DNA of 64,000 nt from Cyanophora paradoxa CCMP329 (GCA_004431415.1 QPMI01000207.1:112818-176817), one strand, 5' to 3'. Numbered from the stretch's first letter, positions 34,637 to 62,767 are shown. Numbers and translations are program-made. The notes: generated from the letters alone by a model not told the origin.

Positions 34637-34861
34637 CGATATCGCTGTGCTGGAGACCGCGCGCGAGTGCCCGGCAAATTCGATCCGCTTTGGGGGTACC
34701 TGCTTCATTGTTGCGCCGCCGGCGCGCGCTCGGTTACTGCTTCTAGCTCTTGCATGGCCCGCGGCTAGTATGCCCGTGTTATCGATGCGCACGCTCGGTG
34801 CATAGTTCCAGTAATGTCATTTCAAGTTTTCTTTGTCGACTTAGCAACAAAAAGAAGCGCG

Positions 34862-38152: not shown

Positions 38153-38661
38153 ACGGGCCCCGTCCAGCCCTTTTTTTATGGAACTAGAGCGATACGCTGC
38201 CAGAATTCTTAAGCTTGCATAACATCTTCGCTAATTCCTTTCGAGATTTCACGTGAGCTGCCTGTGTACATAAATCCAATTTGTTCCGCCTTTTCTCTCT
38301 GATAAGTATGTGCCGTGGGTTAAAGTGAGTGATTCGCACTGGGAGCGTTGTCTACGTTTAAATATCCGGCGTGACATTCCAGCGTGCAGGGGCGGCCTTG
38401 CTAATGGGCCGCGCTGGGCACTGCGGCATTGTCGGGCATGGGCATGCGCAGCTCGCGATCGCGTCCTGTCGCGGGGATCGGATGCTATAGGGCGCCAGCT
38501 GCAGCGCCTAGCTATAGATCTCATATGTACATGTGGACCGCGCGCGCGGCCGCGGGCACCGGGGGCCCGAGCTCCAGCGGCTGGAGAGGCCTAGGGAGCG
38601 TTGGGAGACCCGGTAGCCAAGTCGACTCCTGATTCACGGGGCCCGGGGCCGGATTGGGGGA

Positions 38662-40190: not shown

Positions 40191-40518
40191 TGCTTACGCC
40201 ACCGGGCGCAGAACGATGAACGCACTGCTCGTGCGACGACCGCGCTGCTGTTCGTGCGTTGTAAGGGCTGTTGTTTCGTCCGACCGCACTGCTGTGACTC
40301 AAGATCTTACTGTGTCGTGCTTCAGTTTCGTGCGTGTGCTGCTGCGTGCTGCGTGCCGGAGCCGACTGCGAGAAAGCACGGGGAGGGGGGAGCCGCATGG
40401 GGCTACACGCGTAATTCATTCGGTGCACCGCCGGGAAGCATCCTAGTCATAGATATTGCGTTGAAGCAGCAGTTAGAACAAAAGGAAACGCGTGACGTGG
40501 GCGGACGTGGGGCGCCCA

Positions 40519-42531
40519 ATGGCGCCCGCTGAGATCGCAGAGGCGGCGCCGGTGTTCTACCTACTGGGCCCGGGGCGCATGGGGAAATCGTGTACCGTTC
40601 GTCTCCTCAAGATCCTTTACTCCCACGAGGGCATCACAAGTGCGCCCCCTTGCCGCCGCGCACAAATGCGATTTCGATGCAATCGCAGGCTGGGAGCGGG
40701 AGCTCGCAAAGGAGCGGTTGGTAGAGAACCTCATGGACGCCGTGAAAGTCCTTCTTGACGCGGCCGGTTCGACGAGCAAAGCGGCGATCAGTTCGATAGA
40801 ATAGCGTACATGCGCAGCTCACAAAGCGCAGACCTGGAGGACTCCCGCCTTCCCGCGAACAAGATTAAGGCGCGTCCGTGCACCCTCTTCCCCCCGCGCC
40901 GCGCAGCCAGCGCCAGCTCCGCCCCGTATACGCGCCCCGCTCAACCGCATGCGCAGGAGACAAGAACGCTGATGGAGAAGTGGGCGGATCTAGACGAAAG
41001 GGACAAGACGCGGGCAACGTCTCACTTCAAAGAACTCGCCCAGGACCCCGGTGCGTCTCGACTTGCGGCGGGACCTCTCTCCGTGGCCAACCTCTCCCAG
41101 GCTTCCGCGCTTCGATGCTGCGCGTCCTGCACGACCCCAAGAACCCTCTGTGGCCCGGCATCTTGGCCGTCCCCTCCGCTGGTGCGGCGAGCGCTAGCGC
41201 GCATCGCCAGTGCATCGGCTCGTACGCGTGCGCGCGCTGAGAGAGGCGTCGGCCAGAGTACCTCACCGACCACCACGAGCGCATCCTAGACAAGGTTCTT
41301 TGCTGCATCTAGACCCAGCTTTCCAGTGCGGACGCCAGTTGCCAACCTTTCGGGCGCAGGATTACCTGCCGACGGCGGTCGACTGTCTCCACGTCCGTAC
41401 TCGAACGACGGGGTGTGCCGCTTCAGTTCTGCTCCTGTTTCTCCGCGCAGCTGAATATCGCCTTGCGTAGAATCTACTCTACCGAGTGAGGACAGTGACC
41501 CATCCGCTTCACCCGAGCCAACGCACCCTTGCAGCTTCGAGGGGTCCCACTTCGGTCCATTTGCCGTCGTGGACACGGGAGGCGAGCGCTCGGAGCGCAG
41601 GAAGTGCGCGTGGCCGGCGCCAGCCGCGTCGAGCCGCCGCGCCTGAGCGCGGCTGGCAGGTGGCCCATGTGGTGGGCGCGCGACGGGAAGCAGATGGCCT
41701 CGCGCGTCTTCCCCGTCTTTGTGGCGCGGCTCGACTCGTTCGGCGAGCAGCTCTTCGAGGCGCGCCCCGCCGCCCCGCCCTCGCCTTCCGCAGCCGACGG
41801 CGGCGGCGCAGGCGGAGGGGGACATGATGCGGGACATGGTCGACTGCTGGCGGGGGACGCTGGCGGCCCCGTTCGTGAAGGAGGCGGCCACGCCCTACTT
41901 CCTGCTCCTCAGCAAGGTACCCCCCCGCTCCCGCGCCCTCGGCGCTGCCGCTGACCGCCCGCGGGGAGGTCGACGGGCTGCGCAAGACGCTCGGCGACGG
42001 CTCGAGGCTGAAGCAGGGTGCGCGCCCCCCGCGCTTCGGCGCGCCCGCCGCGAGCTCCCGCCGACGGGCCGCGGCAGTCTTCCCCGGCTACTCCGGCGGC
42101 TCGAGCGTCGACGCCGCCGTCGACTTCGTTCGGGAAATGTGCGCAGCTCGCCCAGCGAACGCGCGCCGCCGCTGCAGCCGGCGACCGTCGGCGTAGGCTG
42201 GAGGGCGTGGCGGCTGAGGAGGCGCCCGGCCTCCCCATTCGCTCGCACGTCGTCAACAGCGTGGACGTGGAGGGCGCGCGGCCCGTCTGGGACTCGATCC
42301 TCACGGTATGCGCTCAGCCCACAGATCTTGATCTGCGACCTGCTAAGCTCCGGCCGCGCGCTGGCAATGTGTGCGCAGGAGGCGATGCAGTCGCTAGGTC
42401 GCATTACGGACCGTGGAGACCCAGATGTCGGGCCCTCAACACGACATTGTCAGCCCGCTGCAAGCTCGAATTGCGAATATGATGTCGTTGAATCCGGAGC
42501 TGGAAAGTGGCGGCCACCCGCTCGACCGTGA
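40519..42531 (+). CDS. Divergent stand-alone heterotrimeric G-protein alpha-like protein lacking an N-terminal lipidation motif (copy 1)
   Basis: Spliced: PVFYLLGPGRMGKSCT (G1), EYLTDHHERILDKDYLPTAVDCLHVRTRTTGI (G2), FAVVDTGGERSERRKW (G3), FVARLDSFGEQLFE, FLLLSKVD (G4), VFPGYSGG, HVVNSVD..VWDSILTEAMQSLGRI. Confidence 0.88.
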
Positions 42532-42825
42532 TCATCGGATCCCTTAGCCCTGCTGCATGCATATGTCCAGGCCAGCTGCAGGCCAATGCAATCAGACTCC
42601 GGGAGTCACTGAGTCCTTGTGAGATTCCAAAGTTCGGTATATGATCATGATCATGAGCAGCCTGGCAGCGGAGTCTACTAGAGTCTATACGGTTCAAGAC
42701 TACAATAGTGCAAACCGACTACGACGGCAAACTAGGCCAATAAACAAATACCTAAAATGGATCCAGACCTCGATCCCATGATCCGGATGGGGACAGCTGG
42801 GAGAAACGGAAGCCTCAAAGGCTAG

Positions 42826-43550
42826 GGCGGCGCCTCAGGCGGGCCCCTCGTCCGCGGCGTCGGCGTCAGAGGCGGGAGCGGCGGGGACGGCGCCGAAGCG
42901 CGGCTCGTCGGCGGCTGCCTCGGGGCCCGCGGACGCCTCTGCCCCGTCGGCGGCGCCGGCGCCGGCCTCCTCCTCCCGCCCGGCGCCCCGGCACGCCCAG
43001 CGGCTCGCGGGCGACCAACGCGTCGGGAGGCGGCGGCGGCGGCTCGAGCCTGCTCGCCACTCTTATGCGGCGCCCCTCGGCAGGCCCCACCCGGGCGAGC
43101 CGCTCCGCCAGCGTCAGCAGCGCCGGCCCGTCGGCGGCCAGCGCCGCTCCCGCGGGCGCCGTCGCCTCCTCCTCCTCGCCTGCCGCTGCCGCCGCCGGCC
43201 CGTCCCCGACCAACCTCGCCTCCTCGATCTCATCTTTCTCGTCCCGTGGCGTCGCCACCTTCGGGCGCACGCGCTCCAGCGGGGTCGTGGCGCCCTCTCC
43301 CGTGCCCTCGGGCCCTGCCCCCGCCGCGGCCTCGTCGGCCCCCGGCAGCGCCGTCGTGCGCGCTGCTCCGCCGCCGGCCGCCTCGTCGTCGGCGGTGAAC
43401 GCCTCGGGGGAGCGGCCCCGCGGGCGCCTCGCCAGCCTCTTCTCCTCCTCGTCCCGCAACAAGCCGCCCGGCGCCACCGCCGCCGGCAGCAGCAGCGGCG
43501 GGGGGAGCGGCACCCCCGCCCCGGCCGCCGCTGCCGGGCGGCGCTCTTAG
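42826..43550 (+). pseudogene. Promoterless 3' fragment of the RING E3 gene created by the duplication
   Basis: Copies only the Ser/Ala-rich last ~720 nt of the 29379-32478 gene. Confidence 0.7.
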
Positions 43551-43707
43551 TAGCTTCTGCAGGGGCGTCCTGGAGGGGCGTCCTTCCGGGGACGGGGCCC
43601 CAAGCCCCCCGCGTCCCCGCCTAGTCTTCCTGCGCGGCCTTGGGCGCGCGCTGGCTGTGTTTTAATATGTGACACTATGCAGGCCTGCGCCTCTGATGAG
43701 GCTGGGG

Positions 43708-45710
43708 CTAGATGGCGCGGTAGTCGGCGAGGATCTGCTCGGCGCGGGCGAAGGCCTCGTCGAAGAAGGCGGCGTCGCAGCCGTGCCGCGCGTACTGGTG
43801 CAGGTACGCCCGCGCCGCCCGCATCGCCGCCCCCCGCTCCAGCAGCGCCTCCAGCGGGCCCGCGATCGTCCCCGAGTTCCTGGCCGGCAGTCGGCGAGGA
43901 GAGGGAGGGGGGCGGGCGGGGGAGGGGCGGGCACGTGAGGGCGGTGGCGCTCATCTCGTACTGGTGGACGGGCTCCGGGTGCCGCGCGACCGCCAGCGGG
44001 TCCGGCACCCAGCCGGGGTACAGCGCCGGGTGCGCGAAGCCGCTCGCGTCGGCCGCTGGCGGGCCGCCGGCTCAGGCAGCGGCGGCGGGGCAGGGCGGGG
44101 TGGGGCGGCGCACTGTGGACGTCCTTGCCGCGGAGGAAGAGCATGGTGGCGAGGGAGCGGTGGATGCGGTGGTCGGGCGGGCGGCCGGCTGCCGGGCGCG
44201 GTCGGGGGCGGAGGGGAGGGGGCGAGGGGGCAGGGGCCGCGGGGCGCACGCTCGGGGAGGTGGACGCCGAAGGGGACGTTGAGGTCGAACTTGGCGTCCG
44301 TCACCAGCATCTGCAGCGCGTGCTGCGCCGCCCCTCGCCCTCCGCCGCCCCGCCGCCCGCCCCGCGGCTCAAGGGCGGGGCACCTTGAGGAGGGCGGGCC
44401 ACTGGAAGACGGTGAAGGGGACGGAGGCGCGCGGCATCTGCCGGCGCCGGCAGCGTCACGAGCGCGCTCGGAGGGGGGGCGCGGCAGCCGCGGCGCGCCT
44501 GGGGGGTCGTCTTGATCGTGAGGAGCTTGTAGGATGGGTGCGAGCAGAGGTGGCGGAGCGGGTCGAGCAGCACGTTGGTCGGGCGGCCGAGGGCGGCACG
44601 CGAGGCGGAGGCGGAGGCGGGGCGGCCCGGGCGCGCGGAGGGGGCGGGGGCGCAGGGTGCCGGGACGGGGAGAGGCGGGAGGGGAGGAGGACGGCGGCGA
44701 GGGAGGAGGCGATGACGCGGTTGAGGTCGGGGAAGTTGGGGCGCGCCACGTTCAGCAGCCGCGTGCACACGGCGCTCGCCACCTCGTTCGCCTCCACGAC
44801 AACCCCGTCCGAGTGCTGCGCCCCGGCCCCCGTCAGCGCTTCGACGCGGCCGTCGGCCGTACGCGTGCGGCCCGGCGGGACTCGCCTCGCAGAGGTGCGC
44901 GAGGGTCAGCAGCGCGTTGTAGTTCTGGACGACGACCTCGCCCGTTCGGTACGGCCAAACCACCTGCGCTCGCGCTCGTCCTGCGGCGCAACCTTCCGAG
45001 CGAACGCGCGCACCTGGTTCATGAGCAGCGCGTTGGGAAACTCGTCCCGCACCATCTCAGTGACGAATGCCCCTGGCGCTGGGTCGGCGGCGAGCGCAGC
45101 GGACGCGGCGCTGCCTGCGAACCAACGCCGGAGCCGGTGCCGCCTGCGAGCGACTGCAGGAAGAGGAAGCCGCCAAACCAGTCGCAGGACTCGACCTCCC
45201 GCCGAATCAAATCGGAGACCGATTCCTGCGACGCCGGGCCGTGCGTCCTGTACCTGCAGCCCAGCATGAGCGGTTGAGACGAAGTCGGACGCGCTCATTA
45301 TCGACACACCCGTACGCCCAGTTGTTGCCGGAGCCGCTCTGCTTCGTGAAGTGCCGGTCGTCGGCGTACCGCCAGCGCCCGCCCCTGGTAGCATGCTGCC
45401 GAGCCTGCGTGCGAAGGTCTCGTCCCTCATCGGCAAGCCGCCGCCGAGCGCACGGACCTGGCCGACGACACGCGGCTCCATGTCGACCAGCACGCCGCGC
45501 GCAATCGGTGCGCCTACGAGGCGCTTGCCATTGGTACGAGTTTTGAAGCGCAAGCGAGCGGAAGCCGGCCGCACCGGCGTCCGCATGGCGGAAGAAGACT
45601 TCTTCCTCGGCAGCGCTGTGCGGCCGCAGCAAGTGCGCTGCGAGCGTCTCGAAGAGATGGCAGCCGAGCTGGTTGCCGTACTGGCCCAGCTGGACCGTCA
45701 CGACCGACAT
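43708..45710 (-). CDS. TUBD1: Delta-tubulin (copy 2)
   Basis: Duplicate of 32634-34636. Confidence 0.88.
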
Positions 45711-45935
45711 CGATATCGCTGTGCTGGAGACCGCGCGCGAGTGCCCGGCAAATTCGATCCGCTTTGGGGGTACCTGCTTCATTGTTGCGCCGCCGGCGCG
45801 CGCTCGGTTACTGCTTCTAGCTCTTGCATGGCCCGCGGCTAGTATGCCCGTGTTATCGATGCGCACGCTCGGTGCATAGTTCCAGTAATGTCATTTCAAG
45901 TTTTCTTTGTCGACTTAGCAACAAAAAGAAGCGCG

Positions 45936-47991
45936 CTAATCGTCCTCCTTGCCGTAATTGCTGTCGTCCCTCAAGAGCTTGTCGATCTCGTCGTCCTGCG
46001 AAGGTGCGCCTCAGAGCTGCGCGGCGGCGAGAAACTGCCCCTACGCACGATCCTCTTGGCGACGTCCTTCGGCTTCGAGGCGGCGCCGCCGTTGCCGTTC
46101 CCGCTCCCGTTGCCGTTGGCGATGGGCTTCAGAGGCGACACGGGGTCCGCCGAGGGGTTCACGACCTGCCCCGAAGCGCTCGGCGCCGCGGCGGGGGGAG
46201 AGGGCGGGGGAAAGGGGGCGCGCGGGGCGCACGCCGCCCTGCTTGAGGATGTCCTGCACGCTCGAGTTGACGGTCATGCTGCGGGGCGGGGCGTGAGGGG
46301 AGGGGCGGCGCCGGGGCGCGGGGCAGGGAGGGCACCGGGTCTGGCGGACGAGGTCGTCGAGCTCGCCCTCGCTGAAGAGGTCGGAGAGCTTCACGTCGGG
46401 GGCGATCACCCGCAGCTCCCGCTCGATGTAGTCTGCCCCACCTCAGGCCCCGCAGCGCGGAGCACGGGCGGGCCCTGCCGGGATTCGAACCCGTGACCTC
46501 GAACTCGTCCAGCGCGTCGAGCTCGTACGTGGAAGGGTCCCCCGTGACCTGCGCGGCGGGGGGAGGTCAGGGAGGGGGGGGGGGGGGGGGGGGGGGGGGC
46601 GGGCAGGAGGGGCGGGGGGCGGGGCGCCTCGAGGAGGCGCGCGGGCTCCGGGGCGCCGGGGAAGCAGGCGGCGAGGACGCGCCCCAGCGCCGCCGCGTCC
46701 GTCCCGCTCACGCCCTCCCCGATTGTAGCGAAGTACGCCTGCGCTGAAGTGAGCGGCGCGGTGCCGCGTGGGGAGGCTTGCAGCGCGCCTGGATGCTGTC
46801 CCTCGCATACCGGCAGGCCTCCGCGTCGTCAACAGTGGGCGCGGCGCCGCGAGGGCCCGCCGGTGTGACTGCGGAGGGGCGCTCGGGGCTTCTCCCCCTC
46901 GGGCGCGGGGGGCGGGGGGAGGCGGACGGACCGAGGCGGGAGGGGCGCGGGGGCGTGGCGGGGGCCGGGGGCAGCGGCTCCTCCTCCTCGAGGTCGAAGT
47001 CGTCGCCCTCCGAGTCCAGCAGCCGCTCGACCGCCGCCGCCTCCTCCGCCTCCGCCCTCCCCGCCGCCTCCCGCTCCGCCTGCCGCTGTCCCTGCCGCGC
47101 CAGCCCCTCCTTCCAGAGCTTCACGCCGGCGCCCCACTCCACGACCGCCTGCCCCGGGGCGTCAAGAGGCGCCGGCGCTCGGGCGGGGGCGCCGGGCCGG
47201 GCCTCGAGGTCGGACGGGGTGAGGGCGGCGTAGCCGGAGCGGGCGGCCCAGGCGGAGAAGAGGAGGGCGTTGGGGTCGACGGCGCCGGAGTGGCGCAGCT
47301 GGACCTTGATGAGCTCCTTCCCCACCGCCTCGTACGTCTCCACCGCGTACTCCCAGAACTCGATCGGATCCACTGCGCAGCCGCTCGCGCTCCAAAGCGG
47401 CCCAGCGGCGCGGCGCGATGACTCACCGCCGGTGGGACCCGCGGGGACGGGCGGCGCCGCGGCGGTCTCCTCCTGCGCCTCGGCCGCCGCTCGGCGCCGC
47501 TTCTTGCCCCCGGGGTTCTTGATGTTGTCATACACGACGACGGCGATGGCGAGGGCGATCAGGAAGATGGTCGAGGAGTCCACGCCGCCGCCGCTCGCGC
47601 CCGCCGCTGCCGCCGCGCCGGCTGCCTGGTCCAGCGCGGCCCGGGCAGGGAGGGGGGACGACAGCTTCCACTCGAACCGCGCGGTGCGGGGACTGCATGT
47701 GAACTTGCGCTGCACGAAGGCGCTGCGGAGACTGCGCGAAAGCGGGAAGTCAGCCGTACTGCGCGCACGCGCCGCGGCCGAGGCGCCGGACAGCTCTCGA
47801 TGCGCGTGCTTGATGTGTTCATCCTCCGAGAGCCGCCGATCCGGCTGTTTCATTCGCATTGAAAGGCTCGCGCACCTCGGCTTTGGCGCAGAAGCGCGCG
47901 GCGCCGCCGTCAGGCTCAGCGCAGCATGTGGAGCAGCCGAGCCGCTCGCGACAGGCCGCACAAGGGCCGGGCAGAGGACGAACGAGGCCAT
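45936..47991 (-). CDS. Plastid-targeted TIGR02444-like protein (copy 2)
   Basis: Duplicate of 34862-36916. Confidence 0.58.
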
Positions 47992-48488
47992 TGGGGTACA
48001 GACTAGATGGAACCGTGGTTCGTGGGTAGAGGGGCATACTCGAGGGCCAGTGTGCAACTCCAACTTCTCGTAAGAATCGTGTGATCTGAACAAGAATCAA
48101 TTGAGGACCGCTCGAGAGTCTGCAGTTGCAGAGGGGAAAATTCCGGAAACTTCTCCCCCCTTCAGTTGGCGGGGTACATTCATCAAGTCGAAGTTCGCGA
48201 ACAGGAGCGCAGGATCAGCACAGCTTGCGCCAGCGCACACAGGTCGACGCCGCTCGTCTCAGCTCATCCCCTGTGATGGTGTGCACTCCCTCACTCGTGA
48301 ACCGCCCTTTCTAGAATGAATAATCGCGCGCGCGCTCTCCGGGCGACCTAGGACGACTTTAGGCGTGCAACTTCGCGAAGCATTGTTATTACATACCATG
48401 CCGTGCAGCCTGCGCGGGTTGAGCGCGCCACCGCCGCCCCCTCCGCGCAATCTCTGCGCGCCAACTTGCTGACCCTCGCAACGTGCAG

Positions 48489-49228
48489 AGCAAGAGCTTC
48501 TCCGTCAAAGGAAGACTTTTTCGCCCGAACTTGACTGGACTCTCGATTGATACGTCTGATTAAGTGAGGCCCACTCTCGCGCTTCTCCAATATTCGCTTT
48601 GGCACATTACTAGAAGTCACTCTGGTGTCATTACCGCGGCCCACGTGTCCTAGGGATCGAACCGACGGAAGGCTGATCTCGCCCGCCTGTGCAGGTACTG
48701 CGCCTTCAGAATGCTCAACTCTGGAACTGCTATCTCGTCCATCGTTCCCCCGCTTGTGTCGTTTCGAGTCCGAAGGCATTGCCTGTGAAGGCGAAAGTTC
48801 TGGGCGAGCTCGGCGCTGCCGCAATGTCCGCTGACGTTGGTCGGTTCACACGGGTGTGGAAGGGTTTCGTTTGTTGTTTAGTCGCGCCTCATTCTCTTAT
48901 CCCTCTCTTCTTGCAGGCGGCGGAAGAGGCGATCAAGTGCGGGTTTGTGGCTGAAACCGTGGCTGCTCGCAACCTTTTCGAAATCGAGCTGGAGAAAGCT
49001 GCAGCCCGCGCTCAGATCCGCCACGCTCTCGAGGTCCGCGCGATCGCGATCTTGGACATTCGACGCCCGCTGATCGCTTGGGCTGCGCAGTGTGGGGATT
49101 GGGCCATGCTCTCGGAGGCCTGCGATGCTCTTGAGGAGATGCAGTGCTTTGAGGAGGCGAAGGCCGCACGCGATTCTGTCCAGGCTACGCTCAAGCACCT
49201 TGCGGACGTCCGGGCAAAGCTCCTCTGA
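48489..49228 (+). CDS. Small hypothetical protein or gene fragment (copy 2)
   Basis: Duplicate of 37412-38152. Confidence 0.33.
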
Positions 49229-49737
49229 ACGGGCCCCGTCCAGCCCTTTTTTTATGGAACTAGAGCGATACGCTGCCAGAATTCTTAAGCTTGCATAACA
49301 TCTTCGCTAATTCCTTTCGAGATTTCACGTGAGCTGCCTGTGTACATAAATCCAATTTGTTCCGCCTTTTCTCTCTGATAAGTATGTGCCGTGGGTTAAA
49401 GTGAGTGATTCGCACTGGGAGCGTTGTCTACGTTTAAATATCCGGCGTGACATTCCAGCGTGCAGGGGCGGCCTTGCTAATGGGCCGCGCTGGGCACTGC
49501 GGCATTGTCGGGCATGGGCATGCGCAGCTCGCGATCGCGTCCTGTCGCGGGGATCGGATGCTATAGGGCGCCAGCTGCAGCGCCTAGCTATAGATCTCAT
49601 ATGTACATGTGGACCGCGCGCGCGGCCGCGGGCACCGGGGGCCCGAGCTCCAGCGGCTGGAGAGGCCTAGGGAGCGTTGGGAGACCCGGTAGCCAAGTCG
49701 ACTCCTGATTCACGGGGCCCGGGGCCGGATTGGGGGA

Positions 49738-51262
49738 TCAGCAGTTGGGGAACGTGAGCCCGCCGCACGCTGAGGCAAGGGACGCGCGTGAGCGCAGACC
49801 GCTGATCTCCGATGGCCAAAGCGATCACGTACCCGTTGAAGCAATGAAGAAAATAATGACACACAGCACGCCGAAAATAGCGACCACCAGCCTGGCGGGG
49901 GACCGTGTGTCAGCGCCACCCGCTGGGCAACAGGGCGGGGAATAAAAATGGGAGGGGAGGGAGGGAGGGAGGAAGGAGGTGGGAGGAAGGAGAGACCGGG
50001 GGAAGGGAGGGGAGAGAAAGGGGGCAAGGAAAAGGGGAAGGGGTGGGTGGGGTGGGGGAGGTGAAGGGGGGGAAGGGGGGGGGGGTGAGGGGGGTGGGGC
50101 GGGGGGCGGCAAGACGGGTTCCCCTCACTTTGCGTTTTGTATCCAGAGATGTCGCTTCAGCTGCGTGGCGCCGCGCTTAAAGCTAGCGCACGAGCGGCCT
50201 GATCAGCCACTGCGGCGCGCGCGGCGCCGAGACTGGGAGAGCGCACCGCATGGCTGAGGCGTTGAGGAGCTGCGGGCGCCTTGCGTTAGCACACCCGGTC
50301 CGCATAAAGAACGAAGTCGCACGAGGTTCTTACCTCGGTCTTATCCACGAGGAGCTCGATCTACTGGAAAAATCAAAACGGCGCAGTGCTGGATCCGGAG
50401 CGCTGGTATTGGAGCTGGTGACGGCGACTTCTAGAGTTGGGGTGGGTTTGGGTTTCGGGGAGTGGGGGAAGAGAGGCTACGAGGGGAAGCCGGCACCTTT
50501 TCGCCGCGTGCGAGAACCTTCTCGATGTTCTGCGTCATTATGCCCTTCACCTGGTCGTTCTCTTAGGTGGGGTAGGGCAGGGGGCAGGGAGGGAGGAGGG
50601 AGGGCTGGCGGTGCCGGGGGGCGTGTCAGCGCACCTCGTCTATCTCGCTCTTGACCTTGGCGATCTTGTCGCTGCCCGGGTTGCCGTACTGCTCCACCAG
50701 CCGCGTCAGGACGATGCCGCCGAAGTCATCCTGCATGGCCCCCTCGCCCGCGTTCCGGCCCCGGTCCCCGTACGCTTGCTTCCACTTGTTGCGCATCTCC
50801 TCCAAGAGCTGAGTAGCTTTCAGACGAACCGAGCGAGCGCCTGGGGGAAAGCGCGTACGACGAAAGGCATGCGGCGACCGTAGCTTTCCTCGGTCATGAC
50901 CAGAAAGACGAGCCCTGTGGGTCACCCAAATGAGAGAAGAACATCACAATGGCGCGGCGCCGCTCCGAACCCATGTCGCAGAGCACATGGAAAACATGAT
51001 GCTCCAGAGAATAGCTGCGCCGCTCCTCCCCCACAGACGCGGGCAACCTGCTGCAAACTTCTCGAGCGATGTTGCGAAAGTTGCCTGAGCGGTGCGCACG
51101 TATGAGGACGCGTGGCGCGTGCTGAGCGCGGCACAGCGGGTACGTACCGGTTGTTGTTGCGTAGTCTGCAAGCGCGATGGGGCCCCTGGCGACCAACGCG
51201 TACACGATAGAGCTCGAGGCATGGCGCTCCAGATCGAGGGCATCCGCTCCCGGAAGCGCCAT
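49738..51262 (-). CDS. VAMP7: Longin R-SNARE VAMP7-like (copy 2)
   Basis: Duplicate of 38662-40190. Confidence 0.86.
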
Positions 51263-51589
51263 TGCTTACGCCACCGGGCGCAGAACGATGAACGCACTGC
51301 TCGTGCGACGACCGCGCTGCTGTTCGTGCGTTGTAAGGGCTGTTGTTTCGTCCGACCGCACTGCTGTGACTCAAGATCTTACTGTGTCGTGCTTCAGTTT
51401 CGTGCGTGTGCTGCTGCGTGCTGCGTGCCGGAGCCGACTGCGAGAAAGCACGGGGAGGGGGAGCCGCATGGGGCTACACGCGTAATTCATTCGGTGCACC
51501 GCCGGGAAGCATCCTAGTCATAGATATTGCGTTGAAGCAGCAGTTAGAACAAAAGGAAACGCGTGACGTGGGCGGACGTGGGGCGCCCA

Positions 51590-53599
51590 ATGGCGCCCGC
51601 TGAGATCGCAGAGGCGGCGCCGGTGTTCTACCTACTGGGCCCGGGGCGCATGGGGAAATCGTGTACCGTTCGTCTCCTCAAGATCCTTTACTCCCACGAG
51701 GGCATCACAAGTGCGCCCCTTGCCGCCGCGCACAAATGCGATTTCGATGCAATCGCAGGCTGGGAGCGGGAGCTCGCAAAGGAGCGGTTGGTAGAGAACC
51801 TCATGGACGCCGTGAAAGTCCTTCTTGACGCGGCCGGTTCGACGAGCAAAGCGGCGATCAGTTCGATAGAATAGCGTACATGCGCAGCTCACAAAGCGCA
51901 GACCTGGAGGACTCCCGCCTTCCCGCGAACAAGATTAAGGCGCGTCCGTGCACCCTCTTCCCCCCGCGCCGCGCAGCCAGCGCCAGCTCCGCCCCGTATA
52001 CGCGCCCCGCTCAACCGCATGCGCAGGAGACAAGAACGCTGATGGAGAAGTGGGCGGATCTAGACGAAAGGGACAAGACGCGGGCAACGTCTCACTTCAA
52101 AGAACTCGCCCAGGACCCCGGTGCGTCTCGACTTGCGGCGGGACCTCTCTCCGTGGCCAACCTCTCCCAGGCTTCCGCGCTTCGATGCTGCGCGTCCTGC
52201 ACGACCCCAAGAACCCTCTGTGGCCCGGCATCTTGGCCGTCCCCTCCGCTGGTGCGGCGAGCGCTAGCGCGCATCGCCAGTGCATCGGCTCGTACGCGTG
52301 CGCGCGCTGAGAGAGGCGTCGGCCAGAGTACCTCACCGACCACCACGAGCGCATCCTAGACAAGGTTCTTTGCTGCATCTAGACCCAGCTTTCCAGTGCG
52401 GACGCCAGTTGCCAACCTTTCGGGCGCAGGATTACCTGCCGACGGCGGTCGACTGTCTCCACGTCCGTACTCGAACGACGGGGTGTGCCGCTTCAGTTCT
52501 GCTCCTGTTTCTCCGCGCAGCTGAATATCGCCTTGCGTAGAATCTACTCTACCGAGTGAGGACAGTGACCCATCCGCTTCACCCGAGCCAACGCACCCTT
52601 GCAGCTTCGAGGGTCCCACTTCGGTCCATTTGCCGTCGTGGACACGGGAGGCGAGCGCTCGGAGCGCAGGAAGTGCGCGTGGCCGGCGCCAGCCGCGTCG
52701 AGCCGCCGCGCCTGAGCGCGGCTGGCAGGTGGCCCATGTGGTGGGCGCGCGACGGGAAGCAGATGGCCTCGCGCGTCTTCCCCGTCTTTGTGGCGCGGCT
52801 CGACTCGTTCGGCGAGCAGCTCTTCGAGGCGCGCCCCGCCGCCCCGCCCTCGCCTTCCGCAGCCGACGGCGGCGGCGCAGGCGGAGGGGACATGATGCGG
52901 GACATGGTCGACTGCTGGCGGGGGACGCTGGCGGCCCCGTTCGTGAAGGAGGCGGCCACGCCCTACTTCCTGCTCCTCAGCAAGGTACCCCCCCGCTCCC
53001 GCGCCCTCGGCGCTGCCGCTGACCGCCCGCGGGGAGGTCGACGGGCTGCGCAAGACGCTCGGCGACGGCTCGAGGCTGAAGCAGGGTGCGCGCCCCCCGC
53101 GCTTCGGCGCGCCCGCCGCGAGCTCCCGCCGACGGGCCGCGGCAGTCTTCCCCGGCTACTCCGGCGGCTCGAGCGTCGACGCCGCCGTCGACTTCGTTCG
53201 GGAAATGTGCGCAGCTCGCCCAGCGAACGCGCGCCGCCGCTGCAGCCGGCGACCGTCGGCGTAGGCTGGAGGGCGTGGCGGCTGAGGAGGCGCCCGGCCT
53301 CCCCATTCGCTCGCACGTCGTCAACAGCGTGGACGTGGAGGGCGCGCGGCCCGTCTGGGACTCGATCCTCACGGTATGCGCTCAGCCCACAGATCTTGAT
53401 CTGCGACCTGCTAAGCTCCGGCCGCGCGCTGGCAATGTGTGCGCAGGAGGCGATGCAGTCGCTAGGTCGCATTACGGACCGTGGAGACCCAGATGTCGGG
53501 CCCTCAACACGACATTGTCAGCCCGCTGCAAGCTCGAATTGCGAATATGATGTCGTTGAATCCGGAGCTGGAAAGTGGCGGCCACCCGCTCGACCGTGA
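51590..53599 (+). CDS. Divergent stand-alone G-alpha-like protein (copy 2; two exonic 1-nt G-run deletions)
   Basis: Duplicate of 40519-42531. A G is missing at ~52612 (gagggtcc vs gaggggtcc) and at ~52888, likely sequencing errors. Confidence 0.8.
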
Positions 53600-53921
53600 T
53601 CATCGGATCCCTTAGCCCTGCTGCATGCATATGTCCAGGCCAGCTGCAGGCCAATGCAATCAGACTCCCGGGAGTCACTGAGTCCTTGTGAGATTCCAAA
53701 GTTCGGTATATGATCATGATCATGAGCAGCCTGGCAGCGGAGTCTACTAGAGTCTATACGGTTCAAGACTACAATAGTGCAAACCGACTACGACGGCAAA
53801 CTAGGCCAATAAACAAATACCTAAAATGGATCCAGACCTCGATCCCATGATCCGGATGGGGACAGCTGGGAGAAACGGAAGCCTCAAAGGCTAGGGCCGG
53901 GGAGGGAGATCATGATCATGA

Positions 53922-56900
53922 TCAGTGGGCGGGGGCCTGGACGGCGGCCGCGATGACGGAGCCGGAGGCGAAGCCGAAGGCGACGCGGAGGAGGAGGTCG
54001 CCGCCGGGGGGGGCCCACTGCACGTCCGCCGACTTGGCCTCCAGGACGGCGATGTCGGCGGAGAGGAAGGGGCACGCGAAGAGGGCGGACCCCGTGCGGG
54101 CGTCCAGCACGGAGACGGTCTTCTCGTGCGAGACGAGCGCCACGCGGGCCCCGTCCGGCGAGGCCGCCATGGCGAGCGCGATGGCGGCCGGCTTCACCCG
54201 CGCCACCCGCCACGCCGCCGCCTCCGCCCCCGCCCGCTTGCCCTCGTACGCCGCCACCTCATCCCCCACCCCGACAGCCAGGCCGCCCCCGGGCAGCGGG
54301 CCCGCCGCTGCGAAGACGGGCTGCGGCCGGCCGGCCTGGTACCGCGCCGCCTCGCGCAGCGCGCCGCCGCCGAGCGCGAGCAGGCACGCCGCCCCGTCCA
54401 GCGCGGCGCAGGCCAGCGTCTGCCCGTCGTGGGAGAAGCGCAGCGACGCCACCGCCGACTGGTGCGGCCGCAGCTGCCCCTCCGCCCGCAGCGCTCCCCC
54501 ACCACCGCCCACACCTGCACGTTCCCCGCCCGATCTGCTGACGCCGCCCGCCCTCCGCCCGGCGCTGCCGCAACCGCGGTGACGGGCTGGCTGTGGGCGC
54601 GCTGCACAGCCGCGAGCGGGGCGACGGCGGGGCGGCCGTCGGGCGTCGGCGCCGTGGCGAAGAGGGCGACGGTGCCGTCCGCGAAGCCGACGAGCGCCGC
54701 GTCGTCCCCAGCGGCTGCGACCGCCGAGATGGGCGCCCGGGAGGCGGCTTCGCACGGCACCTCGAGGCGGGCGGGGCGGCCTTGCGGCCGGGCCACGGCG
54801 GCCGTCACCACGAGCACGGGCCGGTCGAGCGCGCAGCTCACCACGACGGGCTCGCGCCCCGCCGCGCCGGGGGAGAGGGAGACGCAGGTCACGGCGCCGT
54901 TATGCGCGCGGTCCGCCGCCTCCTCGGCCTTGCGCAGGTCCCACTTCTGCACGTAGGGGCCGGTGGAGGTGTAGAGGTGCTGGCCCGAGGGCGAGAAGGC
55001 GCCGTGCGGGACGGGCCCGCCGATCCCGAAGAGGAAGGCGATCGCGCGGCCTGCGCCGGCCGCCGGCTCCCACACGACGATGCGCCCGTCGGCGCCCATC
55101 GAGGCGACCCGCGAGGCCGCCCCGGCGCCGGCCCAGGCGAGCGAGAGCACCGCCCGCCCGTGCCGCATCGAGGAGGCCGCCAGCATGCCCTCCTTGCCGG
55201 AGGCCCTGCCCGCGTCCTCCGTGTTGAAGACGCGCACGAAGCCGTCCGCCGAGGCCGTCGCGAAGCGCGCGTCCCCCTCCTCGAACACCGCCGCCGTCCA
55301 CTTCTGCTCGTGCGCCCCCGCGCGGACCGTCTGCAGCTGCCCGTTCAAGTCGACGATCGTCTTCTGGACCTTCTCAGGGCGTCAGAGGGCGGCCGCATGC
55401 AGCGGATCCGCGACTGCGCACCTGCAGCTCGGACGCCGGCATCGCGAAGCGCACGCTCGTCTTCACGTCGTCGACGAGGTTCTTGTTCTGCAGGTCCCTG
55501 AGGCTCTACTGTCAGCGGCGGCCAGGGCGCGGTGCAGCGCGGGGATTTCGAAGGCACCAGATGTAGCCGAGGTGGCCGTGCTCCGCGCTCTCCGCGCGGA
55601 AGCCAACGAGGAACCTGAAAGGCGATCTCGATTTAATAGCGGAACAAGAGACCAGCGCAGGGAGGGGCACCGGTCGCTGCGAGAGAAGCCGAGCGGCCGG
55701 ATGCTCGCAGACCGAGAGGACTGGTTGCTCGGCGCCGTTCCGAGGATGGCGACCTGCTGCCACCTCACCGGGTCCCGCGTGTCGTACAGGACGATCTCTG
55801 GGCCACGGGTCGGCGAACCACTCGAGGATCTCACAGTTTCAGCAAATCGACTAACCGTCGCCGAGGACACCGACGGCGGCGGCGGCGCCCGTCGGAGACC
55901 ACACCATCGAAGTGATTTCCGCGTTGGGGTGGCGGCTGGTGGAGCGGGCGCCGAAAGGGTGGGCGTACTCGTTTGAATCCGCATCCAGAACCTAGAGCGA
56001 GTGTGAAACAACGAATGAGCCTCGTTGGAACGGAGGCAGGGACAGGCAAAATGAGAGGGGGAGGGGAGGGGGGAGGGGAGGGCCGGGGGGGGGAGGGCGG
56101 GGGACGGAGGGAGGGACGGAGGGAAGGGCGGGGGGGAGGGGGGGGAGAGAGAGAGGGCGGAGCGAAGTGTAGAGGAAGGCGGGGTAATGCAAAGTGGGAA
56201 GAAGGTTTTAGAAGGTGCGGGAGAGGCGCCGGGAGGGAGGGGAGGGTGTAAGGGGATAGAGGGGGGAGGGAGGGGAGGGGCGGGGGGTAGGGGCCAAGTA
56301 GGATAGAGGGGCGGGCGGGGGGTAAGGGAGGGGGTAGGGGGGGAGGGGAGGGGGGAGGGGGGAGGGGGTTGCGGAGAGAAAGAGAGAGAACGGAAGGGCG
56401 TCGTCACACCAAAACGCCGTCTGCGACGGCGACGGCGATGTGGCGACCCGCGGGGTGCGCGCCGTAGCCCAGCTGCTGCTTCTCCAGCCCTGGCATGTAC
56501 TTCCGGACGCTCCCAGTCCTAAAGGCCCCGGCGTGATGAAGCGCGGCAGCGTGCGAGATGGGACACGTACCGTTCGTCCCACCAGACGCGGACGCTCTCA
56601 CCGAGACCGACAATGACTCCCTGCCCAGTCACCGCGATCTGCGCCAGCGGCTCGTCCTTGTATGGGCGCATGCTGCGGCGAAAGTGAGACGAGCGAGGGG
56701 CGGGGCCCGGAGAGACCTCGTGCACTTGTAGGTCATGACGCGGGGCTCGCTCGGCGAACGAGGGGATGCCCAGACGGCGGACGCCGTGCGGGCGTAGTTC
56801 GCGCAGATGTACTGCGCCGCGTACGCGACGGGGCTCTCCGCGCTCCCAGCGCTCCCCAGCGCGTTGACGGCGAGCGGCAGCGTCAGCTCGGGGCTGGCTG

Positions 56901-59900
56901 TGAGCAGAGCGGCGTTCGCCGACACGAATGCCTGGTAGTCGGCGAAGTGGGGCAGCGAGGGCCGCAGCGTCTCCGGCACCGTGACGTACTCGGCCACCAT
57001 CTCCCAGACGAGGCCGGCGCGGGCGCGGCACTCGATGAAGCTCAGGTTCAGCAGCGTCTTCTGGAGCAGCTCCGCGTGCCCCGACGCCGTTGCGTGGTAC
57101 ACCACGTCCCGGAGCGCCTTGGCGTGATTCGGGTCCGCTTGCCAGCGCACGTACAGGAAGTTCGCCATGAGCCTGCAGCGTGCGCGTGAGCGCGCGGAGC
57201 CTCCTGCGTCGCTGCATGCACGTGACGCGCGCACCAGTGGAAGCTTTGATACGCCTGGCTCGTCCTGCGGGCGGGATGAGGATCGCTGCGCGGAGAGCAA
57301 TCTGAATCGCCCGCGATCGCGATCGCACGCACAGAAAATCGCCGTCGAAGTAGCGGCGGCTGCGGCCGGCATTAAAATTACTGTACGCGTGCATGGCAGT
57401 GTCGAGCACTCGGTCGGGCGCACATGACGGCCTTGGCGATCTGCCTGTGGAAGAAGTCGATGACGCCGTTGTTGTGGCGGGAGTGGTCGACGGGGCGCAG
57501 GAGAACTTGCAGCGAGAGGTAGATGCGGGCCCAGGCGTTGGCGACGATGGTGGACTCGCCGCCGGCGCCGCCCTCGCGCTGCACCTTGAGCTCCCCGATG
57601 AAGGCCACGAGGTCGGGCTCCGGGAAGCCGCCGCGGGAGCACTGGACGGCGCACAGGGAGTCGCGGACCATGTCGGGGCCCAGGAAGCCCTCGAGGCGCT
57701 CGAGGACGGCGTCGATGAGGCCCGGCATGTCCTCCGGCAGCGATGCCTGCAGCGGCCGTCAGCCCGCCCTCTCCGGAGGTTCGACGCGGGAGAGAGCCGG
57801 GCGAGCGGGTCGAGGGGGCGCACGATCTTCGCCGTGAGCTTCTCGTACACGCCGAACAGACGCAGCTCCTCGCATGCGACGGCGAGGTAGAGGGGCGAGG
57901 CGCTCTCGGGCTTGGCGACGAGCATGCCGAGCTGGTCGTTGTCGCGCGCCTCGGAGAGCTTCTTGCGGAAGGGCGCGAGAGTCCGCCGTACCAGCTCCCT
58001 CCGCTCCTCGGCGTCCAGCGGCCCGACGGGCAGCTCGCGCGGCCGCGCCGCGCGCGCCCGCATCGCCTCCAGCACGGGACCCTCGAGGCTCGAGACGAGC
58101 AGGCGGGCCCCCTCGGGGAGCGAGGCCGGGATCCACTTGGCCCCGGAGCCCGTGTCGAGCTGGTTGAGGGCGTCGATGACGATCAGCACCGCCTTCTTCT
58201 TCGCCGCCTTCGTCAGCAGCTCCGCGAACTCCTCCCGCAGCCCGTCCACCGTGTCCGCCTGCGTCGCCGCCGCCGCCGTCAGGCCCCAGCCAGGCTCGCG
58301 CACGGCGCAACGCCCGGCTGCCGCCCCCGCACCCGCTCCTCCTCGCTCATCGACAGGCCCGCGATCGCTTCGAGCGCGCCATTGACGGATCGCAGGAGCG
58401 TGGCGAGGGACGTGCTGGTGGGCGTCGTCCCGACGAAGAAGGGGATCACATGGGTGTCCCGGTGCTTGTCGGCGTGCCGCGTGCAGAACGCAGCCAGCAG
58501 CGAACTCTTCCCGCTCCCGGGGAGACCTACGACCACGCATGGCTGCCGCGTCCCCTTTGCCCCCTCCACCATCCCCTCCAGGCTGATGGCCCGTGAGCGC
58601 CGCGCCGCGCGCCGGGGCGAGCGCGGGCGCACTCGCTGAGCAGCCGCTCGCGGCCGATGAACTTGGCGGAGCGCAGCTCCATGAAGCGCCGGTGCAGGCC
58701 GAGCTCCGACATGTCGTCCTCCCCCTGGCCCCCGTCAGCGGTTCCATCCCGCAGGCAGGCCGCGGGGGCGTACGCCCGTGGCGAAGTGGCTCTGAACGTC
58801 CGTCCAGAGATCTTCAAGCATGCGAGCGCTGAACGCCTGCGCATGCCGCCCGTTCACGTTTTCCCCAGGCGGGGCTAAGGAGGGGCAAGGAAAGCAGAGC
58901 CGAGGCGCGCCTCGAGGCTGCCGACCATCGCCTTCTCCTCCCGCAGACCCGCCCACGTGCACGGGTAGTCGAACGTGCGGTCGGGGAAGGTGGCCCGCAC
59001 GCGCTGCTTCAGCTCCGCGAGGGCGCCCTTCGAGTGCTCGGACGTCTCGACGAAGCGCTCGACCAGCTCGGGCGGCGCCGTCCGCAGGAAGGATCCGTCC
59101 CGTATGTAGAAGCGGGCGAGGCACGCCGTCGGGTCCCGCATCGCCCCGTACTGCGCCGCGCCCCGCGTCGGGCCAGGCGGCGCGGGGCCGCGGAATTCGA
59201 AGGGACGGCAGATGCAGAGCGCACGTGCATCTCTCTGCGCCGCCGATCGCCATCGCGAGAATCAGCACGCTTACGGCCATGAGCAGAACGGACCAGAGAG
59301 AGAGAGGACGCACAGCTCGGTGACCGATCGTCGAGCTGGGTACTTCCTGCGGATCCGGATGCGGTCAGGGCGGGGAGTTCGGCTTGGAGGGGCGGACGAG
59401 CTCGCCGAATCCATTCGAGGAAGGGGTCGTCGGAGAAAGAGTCGGGGATCCACCTGAGACCCGGTCTCGCCCCGCCGGTGCCTACCCATTCCCCGCCCCA
59501 GCGCGAAGCACGGCTCGCACCCATATCGGTCGCCAATGAGACCGACGAAGAAGGGCCGCGCGCGGTCGATTTCCCGGAGACAGATCTCGACGACCTGCCC
59601 ACCGGAGCAGACTCGCGGTCATGATCAGCTGCGCATGCAGAAAGCGCCACGAATATCGAATGGCCGGCAGATCGAAGACGCGCCTCGTTGTTGTCCGCCT
59701 CGTGGGCCGTCACCTGCGCGGAGCAAGTCGGTGGAAGCGGTGCGAGACCGGAGCACGACTGGGAGATCTAGAGGGAGGCAGGCGCACGCCCCAGCGAAGA
59801 TCGACTTCCACGACCGTCACGCGGATCGAATTGCAGCGGTCCTGCAGGGCGTGTAAGAATTCGAGATCATCGGGAGTGGGCGCCCCGCGACGGGATCTTC

Positions 59901-62329
59901 TTACCTGCAAACCCGGGAAAACGATGCGAGTAATTTGGTCGCGCTCGCCGTGCCTGCGAACGCGTCACACGCCGAACCAAGCAGATGTCTCGCCAAGAGC
60001 GCACATGTCCTGGAAAGTTGAGGAGAGGAAGATGCGAGCGACGCGCCACTCGCGCTTCATCGATTCGCTGGGGGCGCGGTCGATCCGCAGCCGCGCTCGC
60101 ATCTCTGCCTTGGCGGCCGCCAGAGACGGTCCGCGCGGGCCGCCCGGTCCGCCTCCGCCTCCACCGCCGCCTCCAATGCGCCCCAGTGTCCGGAGGGCCG
60201 TCTGCGAAACCAGCGTTGAGCCCGGGGCGAGATGCTGAAATTCTCAGCGCGGCGCATGCCGTTAGAATCTCGTCCCACGCGGGCCCCGAGGAGGCCGGGT
60301 CGATGTTGTTGACGACGTGCACGCTGATGGAGAGGTTCGGTGCCACCTCAGCCGCCACGCCTTCGAACCTGCGGCCCCCGCGCGCCAGTGTCAGCGTCGG
60401 CCGAGGGATAGGCGAGCGGCAGAGCCCGCACAAGCTGCGGACGAAGTCGACGGCGGCGTCGACGCTCGAGCCGCCGGAGTAGCCGGGGAAGACTGCCGCG
60501 GCCCGTCGGCGGGAGCTCGCGGCGGGCGCGCCGAAGCGCGGGGGGCGCGCACCCTGCTTCAGCCTCGAGCCGTCGCCGAGCGTCTTGCGCAGCCCGTCGA
60601 CCTCCCCGCGGGCGGTCAGCGGCAGCGCCGAGGGCGCGGGAGCGGGGGGGTACCTTGCTGAGGAGCAGGAAGTAGGGCGTGGCCGCCTCCTTCACGAACG
60701 GGGCCGCCAGCGTCCCCCGCCAGCAGTCGACCATGTCCCGCATCATGTCCCCCTCCGCCTGCGCCGCCGCCGTCGGCTGCGGAAGGCGAGGGCGGGGCGG
60801 CGGGGCGCGCCTCGAAGAGCTGCTCGCCGAACGAGTCGAGCCGCGCCACAAAGACGGGGAAGACGCGCGAGGCCATCTGCTTCCCGTCGCGTGCCCACCA
60901 ATCGGGCCACCTGCCAGCCGCGCTCAGGCGCGGCGGCTCGATCGCGACGGGGCTGGCGCCGGCGAGGCGCACTTCTTGCGCTCCGAGCGCTCGCCGCCGG
61001 TATCGTAAACAGTGAAGTCGCCGAACTTAGTGCCTTTATACCTGCGAAGGAGGCCCGCGCCAGTCGGGGTTCAGGCGAGGGACCGCTTTCCACCACGCGC
61101 ACTCGGTTGAGGAGATGCTGCGGGTGCGAAAGGCGGGTTTGAGGAGGCTGAGAAGGCGAGCGGCAGGCGGCGGGCGGCACCCGGTGCTTCGGACACGGAT
61201 GTGAAGCATGTCCTCTTGAGTCGGACGGTAGTCGGCGGAAAGGATGCGCGCGTGGTGGTCGATGAGGTACTCTGGCCGACGCCTGCTTTCAGCGCACGCG
61301 CGACCCGGTGTGCAGGCGATGCGCGCGCGCCGCACCGGCGGACGGGACGGCCAAGATGCCGGGCCACAAGGGATTCTTTGGGTCGTGCAGGACGCGCAGC
61401 ATCGAGGCGCGGAAGCCTGCGAGAGGCTGGCCACGTGCACGGAGAGCGGTCCCGCCGCAGATCTAGACGTCGACGCACCAGGGTCCTGGGCGAGCTCCTT
61501 GAAGTGAGCCATGACTAGAGCCTTTTCCCCGGAAGCCCCAGCCTCCCCCTGCGCATCGCTCCACCTCTTGAGCAGGGCGCGCAGCTCCTGTGCCCGGCGT
61601 GAGCGGCGCGCGACTGGGATCCGGAGGGCGAGAGGGTCGCACGTCGAGCTTGTCGGCGGCGAAGCGGACGTCCTCCGCGAACCCCACATGTTCAAGAACG
61701 ACGCGCAGCGCGTCCTCGAGATTCTCCCGGAGCGGCTCGCGATAGCTCGCGTACTCGACATCGCGTGCGTGGAAGTTCGAGTAGAGCATCTGCAGCATTC
61801 TCGTGCAAGTACTTTTGCCGACACGGCCTGGAAAAGCAGGCGCGTGGTTTAAGCTACGCAATAGCACTGGCCCGAAGCTATCAGTCTGGATCGAAATTAA
61901 AGCGCACCAGGGCCGACGAGGAAGAAGACCGGGCGTTCGCCAGGGACGATCACTGGCGCCTGCTGCATTCGAGGCAGGTGTACGCGTTACAACGAGAGTG
62001 ACCCAGCAGCCAAGAACGAAAGCTCTTTAATTATGGGAGCGGGTCGGAGATCTAGACGCGTACGAGCAGGAGCTCGAAACTCCGTGACGTTCAGCACGAA
62101 CCTGTTGCGGACGCGGAGCCGTGCTAAGCGCTTGTAATGGACCTGCATGTGTTGCGGATGTCGTCTGTGGCTTCGGTGTCGCGGTCGCTGAAGCTTTAGC
62201 TTGCGTGGCTGCCGCAGGCACAGCTGGCAAGCGTGCGGGCCCCGTCACCGCGGCCGGCCGATTAGGAGCATCGACTACGACCTCGATGGTCTCTCCCGCG
62301 CCTCTGGGCTTCGAGCGACAGCAGCCCAT
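53922..62329 (-). CDS. G-alpha-like domain fused to DUF4062-NACHT(STAND)-WD40 (TEP1/NWD-like), roughly 1,800-2,000 aa
   Basis: MGCCRSK start. G-alpha motifs GPGRVGKST, DYRPTQEDMLHIRVRSTG, DTGGERSERKKW, LSKVD, WDEILT. A 58-nt GC-AG intron 60259-60202 is followed by TALRTLGRI-G9-PGGPRG..ESMKREWRVARIFLSSTFQDMHGERD..VDLRWGVT..CLREIDRARPFFVGLIGDRYGWIP..SVTELEMH (DUF4062). Then FIGRE..GLPGSGKSSLLA..LIVIDALNQL..SPLYLAVACEELRLFG (NACHT), followed by WD40 repeats (FATASADGFVRVF, HNGAVTCVSLS, HQSAVASLRFSHDG). One apparent 1-nt frameshift near 54505. Confidence 0.82.
60441..60941 (-). repeat. ~500 bp inverted near-identical repeat shared with the stand-alone G-alpha genes (41629-42129 and 52698-53197)
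   Basis: Exons and three introns match almost base for base from tcgagccgccgcgcctgagc to gccgtcgacttcgt. The flanking exons and introns are clearly diverged. Confidence 0.9.
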
Positions 62330-62767
62330 CGGTAATCTCCTGTCCTACGTACGTCCGCAGTGCTGCACACCTTCGTACACAGTCTCCTGCCGTCTCAGGC
62401 ACAGGCAACAGCTAGTAACAGTGCCGGTCTCGCAGAGTTCTATACCCCCCTAGGCCTGGCCATGCGTCGCATGCGCGCGATGGCATGCGTCTGCGGACTC
62501 TAGATCGATCTACCCGTGCCGCTTACTGGCCAACGCCGCAAGATTACGAAACCTTCTTTGATTTCGATTACGATATGTGCACCGACGACGTCGACCGACG
62601 ACGCGACATACAATAAGTTATCCGCGGTACAACCTAACTGAAAAGAACCTGCTTCTCCTGCGTGCCTGACATAAACTTGCGACTCTAAGCAAATACGCGT
62701 ACATAACCTGAAAGGGCTGAAGCGCTCTAAACGATGCGGCAAGAAAGCAATACGCGAGACTCCCGGA

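Follow-up and report, generated by a model that had tools for sequence, protein, structure and literature searches.

A 64,000-nucleotide (nt) stretch of the genome of the alga Cyanophora paradoxa CCMP329 (GCA_004431415.1 QPMI01000207.1:112818-176817; this whole stretch is the window, and positions count from its first letter) holds on its minus strand, at 53922-62329, one spliced and expressed gene in which a G-alpha domain is joined in frame to a protein of DUF4062-NACHT-WD40 architecture. An initial annotation of the sequence had reported this chimera and read it as a membrane-tethered NLR-like receptor; the observation is confirmed here and the interpretation is partly supported. We tentatively favor a role for the G-alpha domain as a bait or input module of a membrane-anchored STAND NADase (NAD+ hydrolase), rather than as a cycling switch.

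Gene structure and transcripts

The protein was identified by searching exon 26 against 1.84 billion proteins, which returned one 100% match, EukProt EP00741 Cyanophora paradoxa P005375 (gene model tig00000880_g5213.t1, 1217 amino acids), called P0001 here; residue numbers of the fusion are given on the P0001 scale. Domain searches were run exon by exon or with P0001, and the WD40 exons were searched singly. The spliced model has 37 exons, from an ATG at 62329 to a stop at 53922, encodes 1,904 amino acids and contains 31 GT-AG and 5 GC-AG introns; the high GC content and many short introns of the locus are in line with the published genome (PMC6704402). The frame is open throughout except in the last exon (55369-53922), where it changes near a run of five Gs (54500-54496) and needs one extra base to reach the stop. 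Since the model is likewise one letter shorter than an RNA contig (2576 versus 2577), the shortfall is probably a long-read homopolymer error. Of the peptides of exons 1-32, 31 of 32 occur verbatim in P0001 and the RNA contig offsets fit exactly, which argues against a chance construct.

Exon 1 (62102-62329, from sequence and RNA contigs) encodes the N-terminus MGCCRSK and a 70-amino-acid tether rich in Pro, Ala and Thr. Its ATG is the earliest in-frame one downstream of a stop, with no further ATG in the transcribed 5′ region, and RNA contigs begin upstream of it and splice at 62102. The MGCC motif noted in the initial annotation predicts myristoylation at G2 and palmitoylation at C3/C4.

At the other end of the G-alpha domain the frame reads WDEILT (60277-60260) and is followed by the junction intron (60202-60259, 58 nt, GC..AG, phase 0). 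Beyond it come TALRTLGRI, nine Gly codons (60174-60148) that with a short spacer form a linker (60049-60174, also present in the DNA contig X9 record 14), and an open frame that continues into WRVARIFLSSTFQD; without splicing, the frame of G-alpha would end at a stop at 59867. All of these features are where the initial annotation had placed them. A free G-alpha paralog nearby has a GT..AG intron at the equivalent place (53374-53446) and a stop of its own at 53599.

G-alpha, DUF4062 and NACHT are already connected in the public model, tig00000880_g5213, through the identical 58-nt GC-AG intron. This model lacks the MGCC exon, because its start ATG lies inside intron 1, and most of the WD40 region (exons 33-37), because it ends at a 418-nt intron (56409-55992). 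This intron is the sole long one of the gene and contains a GGGA-rich purine tract. The architecture had been thought undescribed: we found no paper describing a G-alpha-NACHT fusion, although Anantharaman 2011 or Bradford 2013 may mention one, but the join itself was already present in this gene model.

Three spliced runs from two studies and a single DNA run were aligned to 56450-62400. The RNA label of the spliced runs is a guess; the DNA run shows none of their joints. In all three spliced runs (X1, X3 and X6), exon 60201-60004 starts at position 149 of its contig, and the spliced model predicts exactly 148 letters ahead of it: 30 that also occur in the paralog, 9 that are unique, and the last G-alpha exon of 109 nt. 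Retention of the junction intron would give one longer piece in the contigs and is thus disfavored; as the main form it is ruled out by these offsets. The X3 contig extends to 58908 at the predicted offsets (640 and 886), X6 record 12 connects exon 1 with G-alpha exons 2-9 over the predicted 414 letters, and X1 record 1 (4166 letters) fits the model to its 3′ end and beyond, into the convergent paralog, apart from one additional letter. Contig depth climbs toward the 3′ end of the gene. Because the G-alpha/DUF4062 joint is not among the 15 of 33 joints listed, the spliced junction rests on the contig offsets together with the public model, which bear out the in-frame fusion claimed initially. 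No contig crosses a 451-nt tract shared with the paralog (described below), so that MGCC is connected to the NADase domain by the long-read assembly and matching low depth. A misassembly at the linker, a concern raised at the outset, is ruled out by the DNA contig X9 record 14, which covers 57452-60470 with no differences. A swap of the 5′ halves by inversion at the shared tract was rejected on contig depth alone, a weak argument: the 5′ contigs (4-8) match the junction contigs (6-9), and the tract stands at 20-66.

Domains and relatives

The G-alpha domain spans exons 2-13 and ends 27 nt into exon 14 (60175-61962, minus strand). Pfam finds it at residues 16-334 (E 1.5e-37, 129.9 bits against a cut-off of 48.8), across both the Ras-like and helical domains (profile positions 25-320 of 333, PF00503). 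A Protein Data Bank (PDB) search with the domain matched 253 sequences, and all 60 of those listed are G-alpha subunits; the top ESM Atlas matches are likewise G-alpha throughout. Word searches with single G-alpha exons, a metagenome scan with G-alpha and an Atlas search of residues 1-620 gave no lead.

Compared with solved G-alpha chains, the domain retains the P-loop Lys-Ser (G1, GPGRVGKST), the switch I Arg (G2, with Thr changed to Ser), DxxG and the G4 Asp. Where canonical cycling G-alpha subunits have the G3 Gln, NKxD and TCAT, it reads DTGGE, SKVD and VNNI (G5, VNNID), that is, the catalytic Gln is Glu (codon 60992-60990), the G4 Asn is Ser and the G5 CAT is NNI. The alphaN helix is absent, being replaced by the low-complexity exon 1, which has no Pfam match, and the alpha5 C-terminus is not free but continues into the linker. 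Given the changed G3, G4 and G5 boxes and the missing alphaN helix, the fused G-alpha is probably not a cycling switch, and by analogy with known families it would have lost GTP hydrolysis. The same Gln-to-Glu change is made by the Pasteurella toxin PMT, blocks GTP hydrolysis and arrests G-alpha in the active state (PMC3202810). An older assembly of C. paradoxa was reported to contain G-alpha and to lack G-beta, G-gamma and RGS (PMC3971589). Some of the switch II residues in contact with G-beta, namely Lys-Trp, are retained; pairing of the fused domain with G-beta is unlikely.

Next in the chain is a DUF4062 domain (exons 14-23, 58774-60048, minus strand), a TIR-like NADase domain of the TeTIR/NIR type, found by Pfam at residues 401-510 (E 1.1e-13), directly upstream of NACHT (656-819), and by alignment to the human TEP1 TIR crystal 11gz (E 1.7e-48). 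Three preprints have shown DUF4062 to be a TIR-like NADase (bioRxiv 2026.05.01.722283, 2026.09.04.749371, 2026.09.21.753143), a point that the initial annotation lacked. A single offset of 893 places 10 of 10 paper-named TEP1 residues on the correct 11gz chain letters, and on this mapping the essential TEP1 residues F902, S905, R914, R942, C959, R976 and E1008 are all kept, as F403, S406, R415, R443, C460, R478 and E508. The columns of these seven residues and of W444 are invariant in 24 relatives, and the RWG loop is present. Because the essential residues are kept, the output is most likely NAD+ hydrolysis rather than G-alpha signaling, which by analogy with TEP1 and APAF-1 would follow STAND activation at the membrane. 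The catalytic E508 (codon 59233-59231) is encoded in a 10-nt micro-exon (59225-59234), and if that exon were skipped, this Glu would be lost and the reading frame altered. The RNA rows listed include no such form.

The NACHT ATPase (exons 24-26, 57824-58724, minus strand) was found by Pfam (AAA_16 and NACHT), motifs and structural modeling, with Walker A GLPGSGKS at 58527-58504 and Walker B VLIVIDALNQ at 58189-58160. It is followed by a winged helix and an APAF-1-like helical domain (exons 27-30, 56726-57746, minus strand; APAF1_C E 3e-4, a fold match and RNA joints). An AlphaFold model of the NADase-NACHT-helical part has a predicted local distance difference test score (pLDDT) of 88.5 and fits best to closed, inactive APAF-1. 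With Walker A and B, a helical domain, a winged helix, a second helical domain and C-terminal repeats, the protein has the makeup of a STAND ATPase, and its NACHT part would be expected, from known families, to exchange nucleotide and oligomerize.

The WD40 region (exons 31-37, 53922-56672, minus strand, ~680 amino acids; delimited by Pfam and the length of X1 record 1) matches Pfam WD40 (E 1.6e-13 and 2.5e-5) and Beta-prop_TEP1_2nd (E 1.7e-7), and from its length probably holds two propellers. The idea that it is G-beta-like did not hold up, and a G-beta identity was rejected: the best matches of the WD40 exon are generic WD40 proteins, with G-beta5 far down the PDB list (E 1e-4), the exon has no match to Pfam WD40_Gbeta, and the fused G-alpha has no alphaN helix, the element with which G-alpha binds G-beta.

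In a tree of 40 rows chosen from the 150 best matches, the fusion core falls in a 15-row clade with TROVE-bearing TEP1 and the BRCT forms of Amoebozoa (support 96/98); the fusion branch is long (1.24), and the tree supports membership of this clade, not placement within it. An origin of the core in the prokaryotic DUF4062-NACHT group is rejected by the same grouping. Given this grouping with eukaryotic TEP1 and the intact NACHT core, G-alpha occupies the slot that TROVE has in TEP1; together with the Pfam, 11gz and fold matches, this upholds the TEP1-type arrangement proposed in the initial annotation. In relatives, the N-terminal slot is filled by a binding module of the TROVE, BRCT, ankyrin or EF-hand kind; among P0021, P0062, P0101, P0147 and P0150, the amoebozoan proteins have BRCT or ankyrin repeats ahead of the NADase domain, and one metagenomic protein has EF-hands there. 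C. paradoxa has a second, very divergent DUF4062-NACHT-WD40 protein (P0097, tig00000889_g5298), with a 215-amino-acid N-terminal extension, outside the group of the fusion. None of the 150 best-matching relatives of the core has G-alpha, and a G-alpha search among proteins of 670-2130 amino acids, in which 8000 candidates were scored, returned P0001 alone. In these limited searches no second G-alpha-STAND fusion was found, and the arrangement is so far known from one species.

The fusion shares with TEP1 the NADase domain with its essential residues, NACHT, the APAF-1-like helical domain, WD40, their order and the clade. TEP1, however, has TROVE-vWA (RNA/vault binding) and a longer WD40 part, whereas the fusion has a putatively acylated G-alpha instead; since Pfam finds G-alpha in place of TROVE-vWA, we class it as a TEP1-clade protein and not as a TEP1. 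NWD1, NWD2, NPHP3 and the prokaryotic DUF4062-NACHT-TPR/WD40 proteins (e.g. of Ca. Methanoperedens) have the DUF4062-NACHT core in common with it (at most 44% identity over 495 columns) but start at DUF4062 and, where sampled, fall outside the TEP1 clade. Canonical G-alpha proteins (PF00503) share the Ras-like and helical domains, MGCC, the G1 Lys-Ser, the G2 Arg, DxxG and KxD, and differ by the catalytic Gln, G4 Asn, G5 CAT, alphaN helix and free C-terminus, all missing from the fusion.

Plant XLG2 (bioRxiv 10.1101/795088) is likewise a G-alpha in a larger protein, without hydrolysis residues and proposed to act without nucleotide cycling; compared by features alone, XLG proteins differ in having an N-terminal extension, in binding G-beta-gamma and RGS and in lacking a STAND or NADase part. 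Plant NLRs with integrated domains (Pik-1 HMA, RRS1 WRKY) also join a copy of a host protein to a STAND receptor. They are NB-ARC-LRR proteins whose bait role has been demonstrated, whereas the fusion is a NACHT-WD40 protein whose bait role is conjectural, and no paired helper receptor was seen near it. In Dictyostelium, Spalten has a G-alpha-like domain fused to PP2C, so that G-alpha serves as a regulatory module in an enzyme, with a phosphatase output and no STAND part.

The free G-alpha paralog and its neighborhood

The free paralog (51593-53599, plus strand, from alignment, with a provisional 5′ boundary) is convergent with the fusion gene and shares its Gln-to-Glu change and SKVD. At 53447-53922 one RNA contig, judged by its length, appears to pass from one gene into the other, so their 3′ ends probably overlap. 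A second copy of the paralog (40522-42531, plus strand, from alignment) lies inside an 11-kb tandem duplication (31758-42828 and 42826-53897) whose halves are 99.7% alike; the differences between them are 31 single-base G/C indels and a single two-base swap. This is the pattern of long-read error, and the duplication is probably an assembly artifact.

A tract of 451 nt in the fusion (60441-60891, minus strand), comprising four exons or parts of exons and three whole introns, is identical to the free paralog (exact match to 41679-42129). It encodes approximately residues 211-306 (the end of switch II, switch III, alpha3, G4 and alpha4) and forms a shared node in both RNA and DNA contigs. Outside the tract, the fused and free domains share 62% identity across 165 aligned codons, with a nonsynonymous divergence (dN) of 0.32 and a synonymous divergence (dS) of 0.86, a rough pairwise estimate in GC-rich DNA that indicates purifying selection. 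The dS of ~0.86 and differing intron positions in the 5′ half point to an old duplication. Polishing could have erased the last differences in the tract solely if it was already ~95% alike, so recent gene conversion likely made it identical. Exon 5 (61336-61416, paralog 41103-41180) encodes identical protein from DNA that is ~91% alike, which may reflect either earlier gene conversion or strong constraint on a surface of the helical domain.

Elsewhere in the window, a VAMP7-like gene (longin and synaptobrevin, ~50540-51230, minus strand) stands head to head with the free G-alpha and has a copy near 39470-40160 (by eye). Other genes encode a Nup192/205-like nucleoporin (122-7397, minus strand), a group 1 glycosyltransferase (16271-18145, minus strand) and a RING finger protein (from 30194, plus strand).

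Proposed function

In the role that we tentatively favor, the gene would make a lipid-anchored STAND protein of ~1,900 amino acids with G-alpha, a TIR-like NADase, NACHT, a helical domain and WD40. Its G-alpha would copy the alga's own atypical G-alpha as a bait or guard, sit at the same membrane and display the same binding surface. A partner, or a pathogen protein acting on the free G-alpha, would bind or modify the fused copy and thereby open the closed APAF-1-like state; NACHT would then exchange nucleotide and oligomerize, and the clustered NADase domains would cleave NAD+, with cell death or a stress signal as the result. That NLRs can carry integrated bait domains is established in plants (PMC4759884, PMC9528084); here, too, a copy of the host protein is found, in the adjacent free paralog with its identical tract. 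Purifying selection outside the tract and identity inside it would be expected if a bait must track its target. A more specific proposal, possible though somewhat doubtful, is an NLR-like receptor that guards G-alpha signaling: a hydrolysis-dead, lipid-anchored bait, kept in step with its free twin through gene conversion and wired to a STAND protein that destroys NAD+, in an alga reported to be without G-beta-gamma or RGS.

Several points weigh against a bait. The sensor or decoy role suggested in the initial annotation is a plausible conjecture, and we know of no Cyanophora pathogen or effector that targets G-alpha. The conversion may carry little weight, as between inverted neighbors 7 kb apart it can be neutral, and full identity of the tract may be a product of majority-rule polishing. 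Most exons outside the tract are ~40-65% identical to the paralog, with switch I and the helical domain differing, and the dN/dS is pairwise and not assignable to one copy. A single-sequence fold of the fused G-alpha has a pLDDT of 40, from which no contact with the STAND core can be derived. As to the output, TEP1 R908 and R954 are Gln and Glu in the fusion; R908 is partly dispensable in TEP1, and some TeTIR/NIR/DUF4062 family members are inactive in vitro. Oligomer-driven activation is so far undemonstrated for TEP1 or any TeTIR protein.

The G-alpha part could instead serve as an address, its acylated N-terminus and binding surface holding the NADase at a membrane or in a complex in the way that TROVE holds TEP1 on vault RNA, and WD40 would then be the sensor. 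We consider this doubtful. It fits the strong dual-acylation motif of exon 1, the binding or localization modules in the N-terminal slot of the TEP1 clade and the resemblance of the model to closed APAF-1, in which WD40 is the sensor. The 76-amino-acid acylated exon would suffice for anchoring, yet the whole 340-amino-acid domain is kept, with dN below dS, and its G1, G2 Arg and G4 Asp are intact. A bait or input module differs from an address in whether the state of G-alpha changes NADase activity. That G-alpha is a working switch, its GTP or GDP state gating the NADase in cis or relaying a signal after STAND activation, is unlikely. In its favor, the domain has GxxxxGKS, the switch I Arg, DxxG and KxD, the Glu also occurs in the free paralog and is possibly the normal state of the subfamily, and some GTPases hydrolyze GTP without the catalytic Gln. 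But Gln-to-Glu blocks hydrolysis in animal G-alpha, neither the G4 Asn nor the G5 Cys-Ala is conserved, the alpha5 C-terminus that receptors grip is tied into the linker, and RGS and G-beta-gamma are reported absent from the species.

It is quite unlikely that the gene is a recent, near-neutral chimera, formed when a duplicated G-alpha landed before a TEP1-like gene and lost its stop, with the NADase-NACHT part perhaps also made alone from an ATG at 60102 or 60060. The restriction to one species would agree with this, and the climb in depth toward the 3′ end is also expected from an internal start; however, the dS and the differing 5′ intron positions indicate an old duplication, frames are open over 37 exons save for one probable assembly slip, and the junction contigs of three runs carry G-alpha exons and no retained intron. 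Very improbable is an intramolecular pair in which the WD40 propeller substitutes for the absent G-beta and holds the protein in its closed state. The reported absence of G-beta and G-gamma and the partly kept switch II contacts would suit it, but the WD40 region is no nearer to G-beta than to other WD40 proteins, such repeats are the usual C-terminus of the TEP1 clade, and a low-complexity tether replaces the alphaN helix.

A guard role, if true, would bring glaucophytes under the integrated-decoy principle and assign an immune role to orphan G-alpha proteins. TEP1-type DUF4062 was first shown to be an NADase in 2026; the replacement of TROVE by G-alpha offers a handle on how the N-terminal slot controls the NADase. 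The protein also presents a natural G-alpha bearing the same Gln-to-Glu change as that caused by bacterial deamidases, and, in a species from which G-beta-gamma and RGS are reported missing, suggests a role for G-alpha that can be tested.

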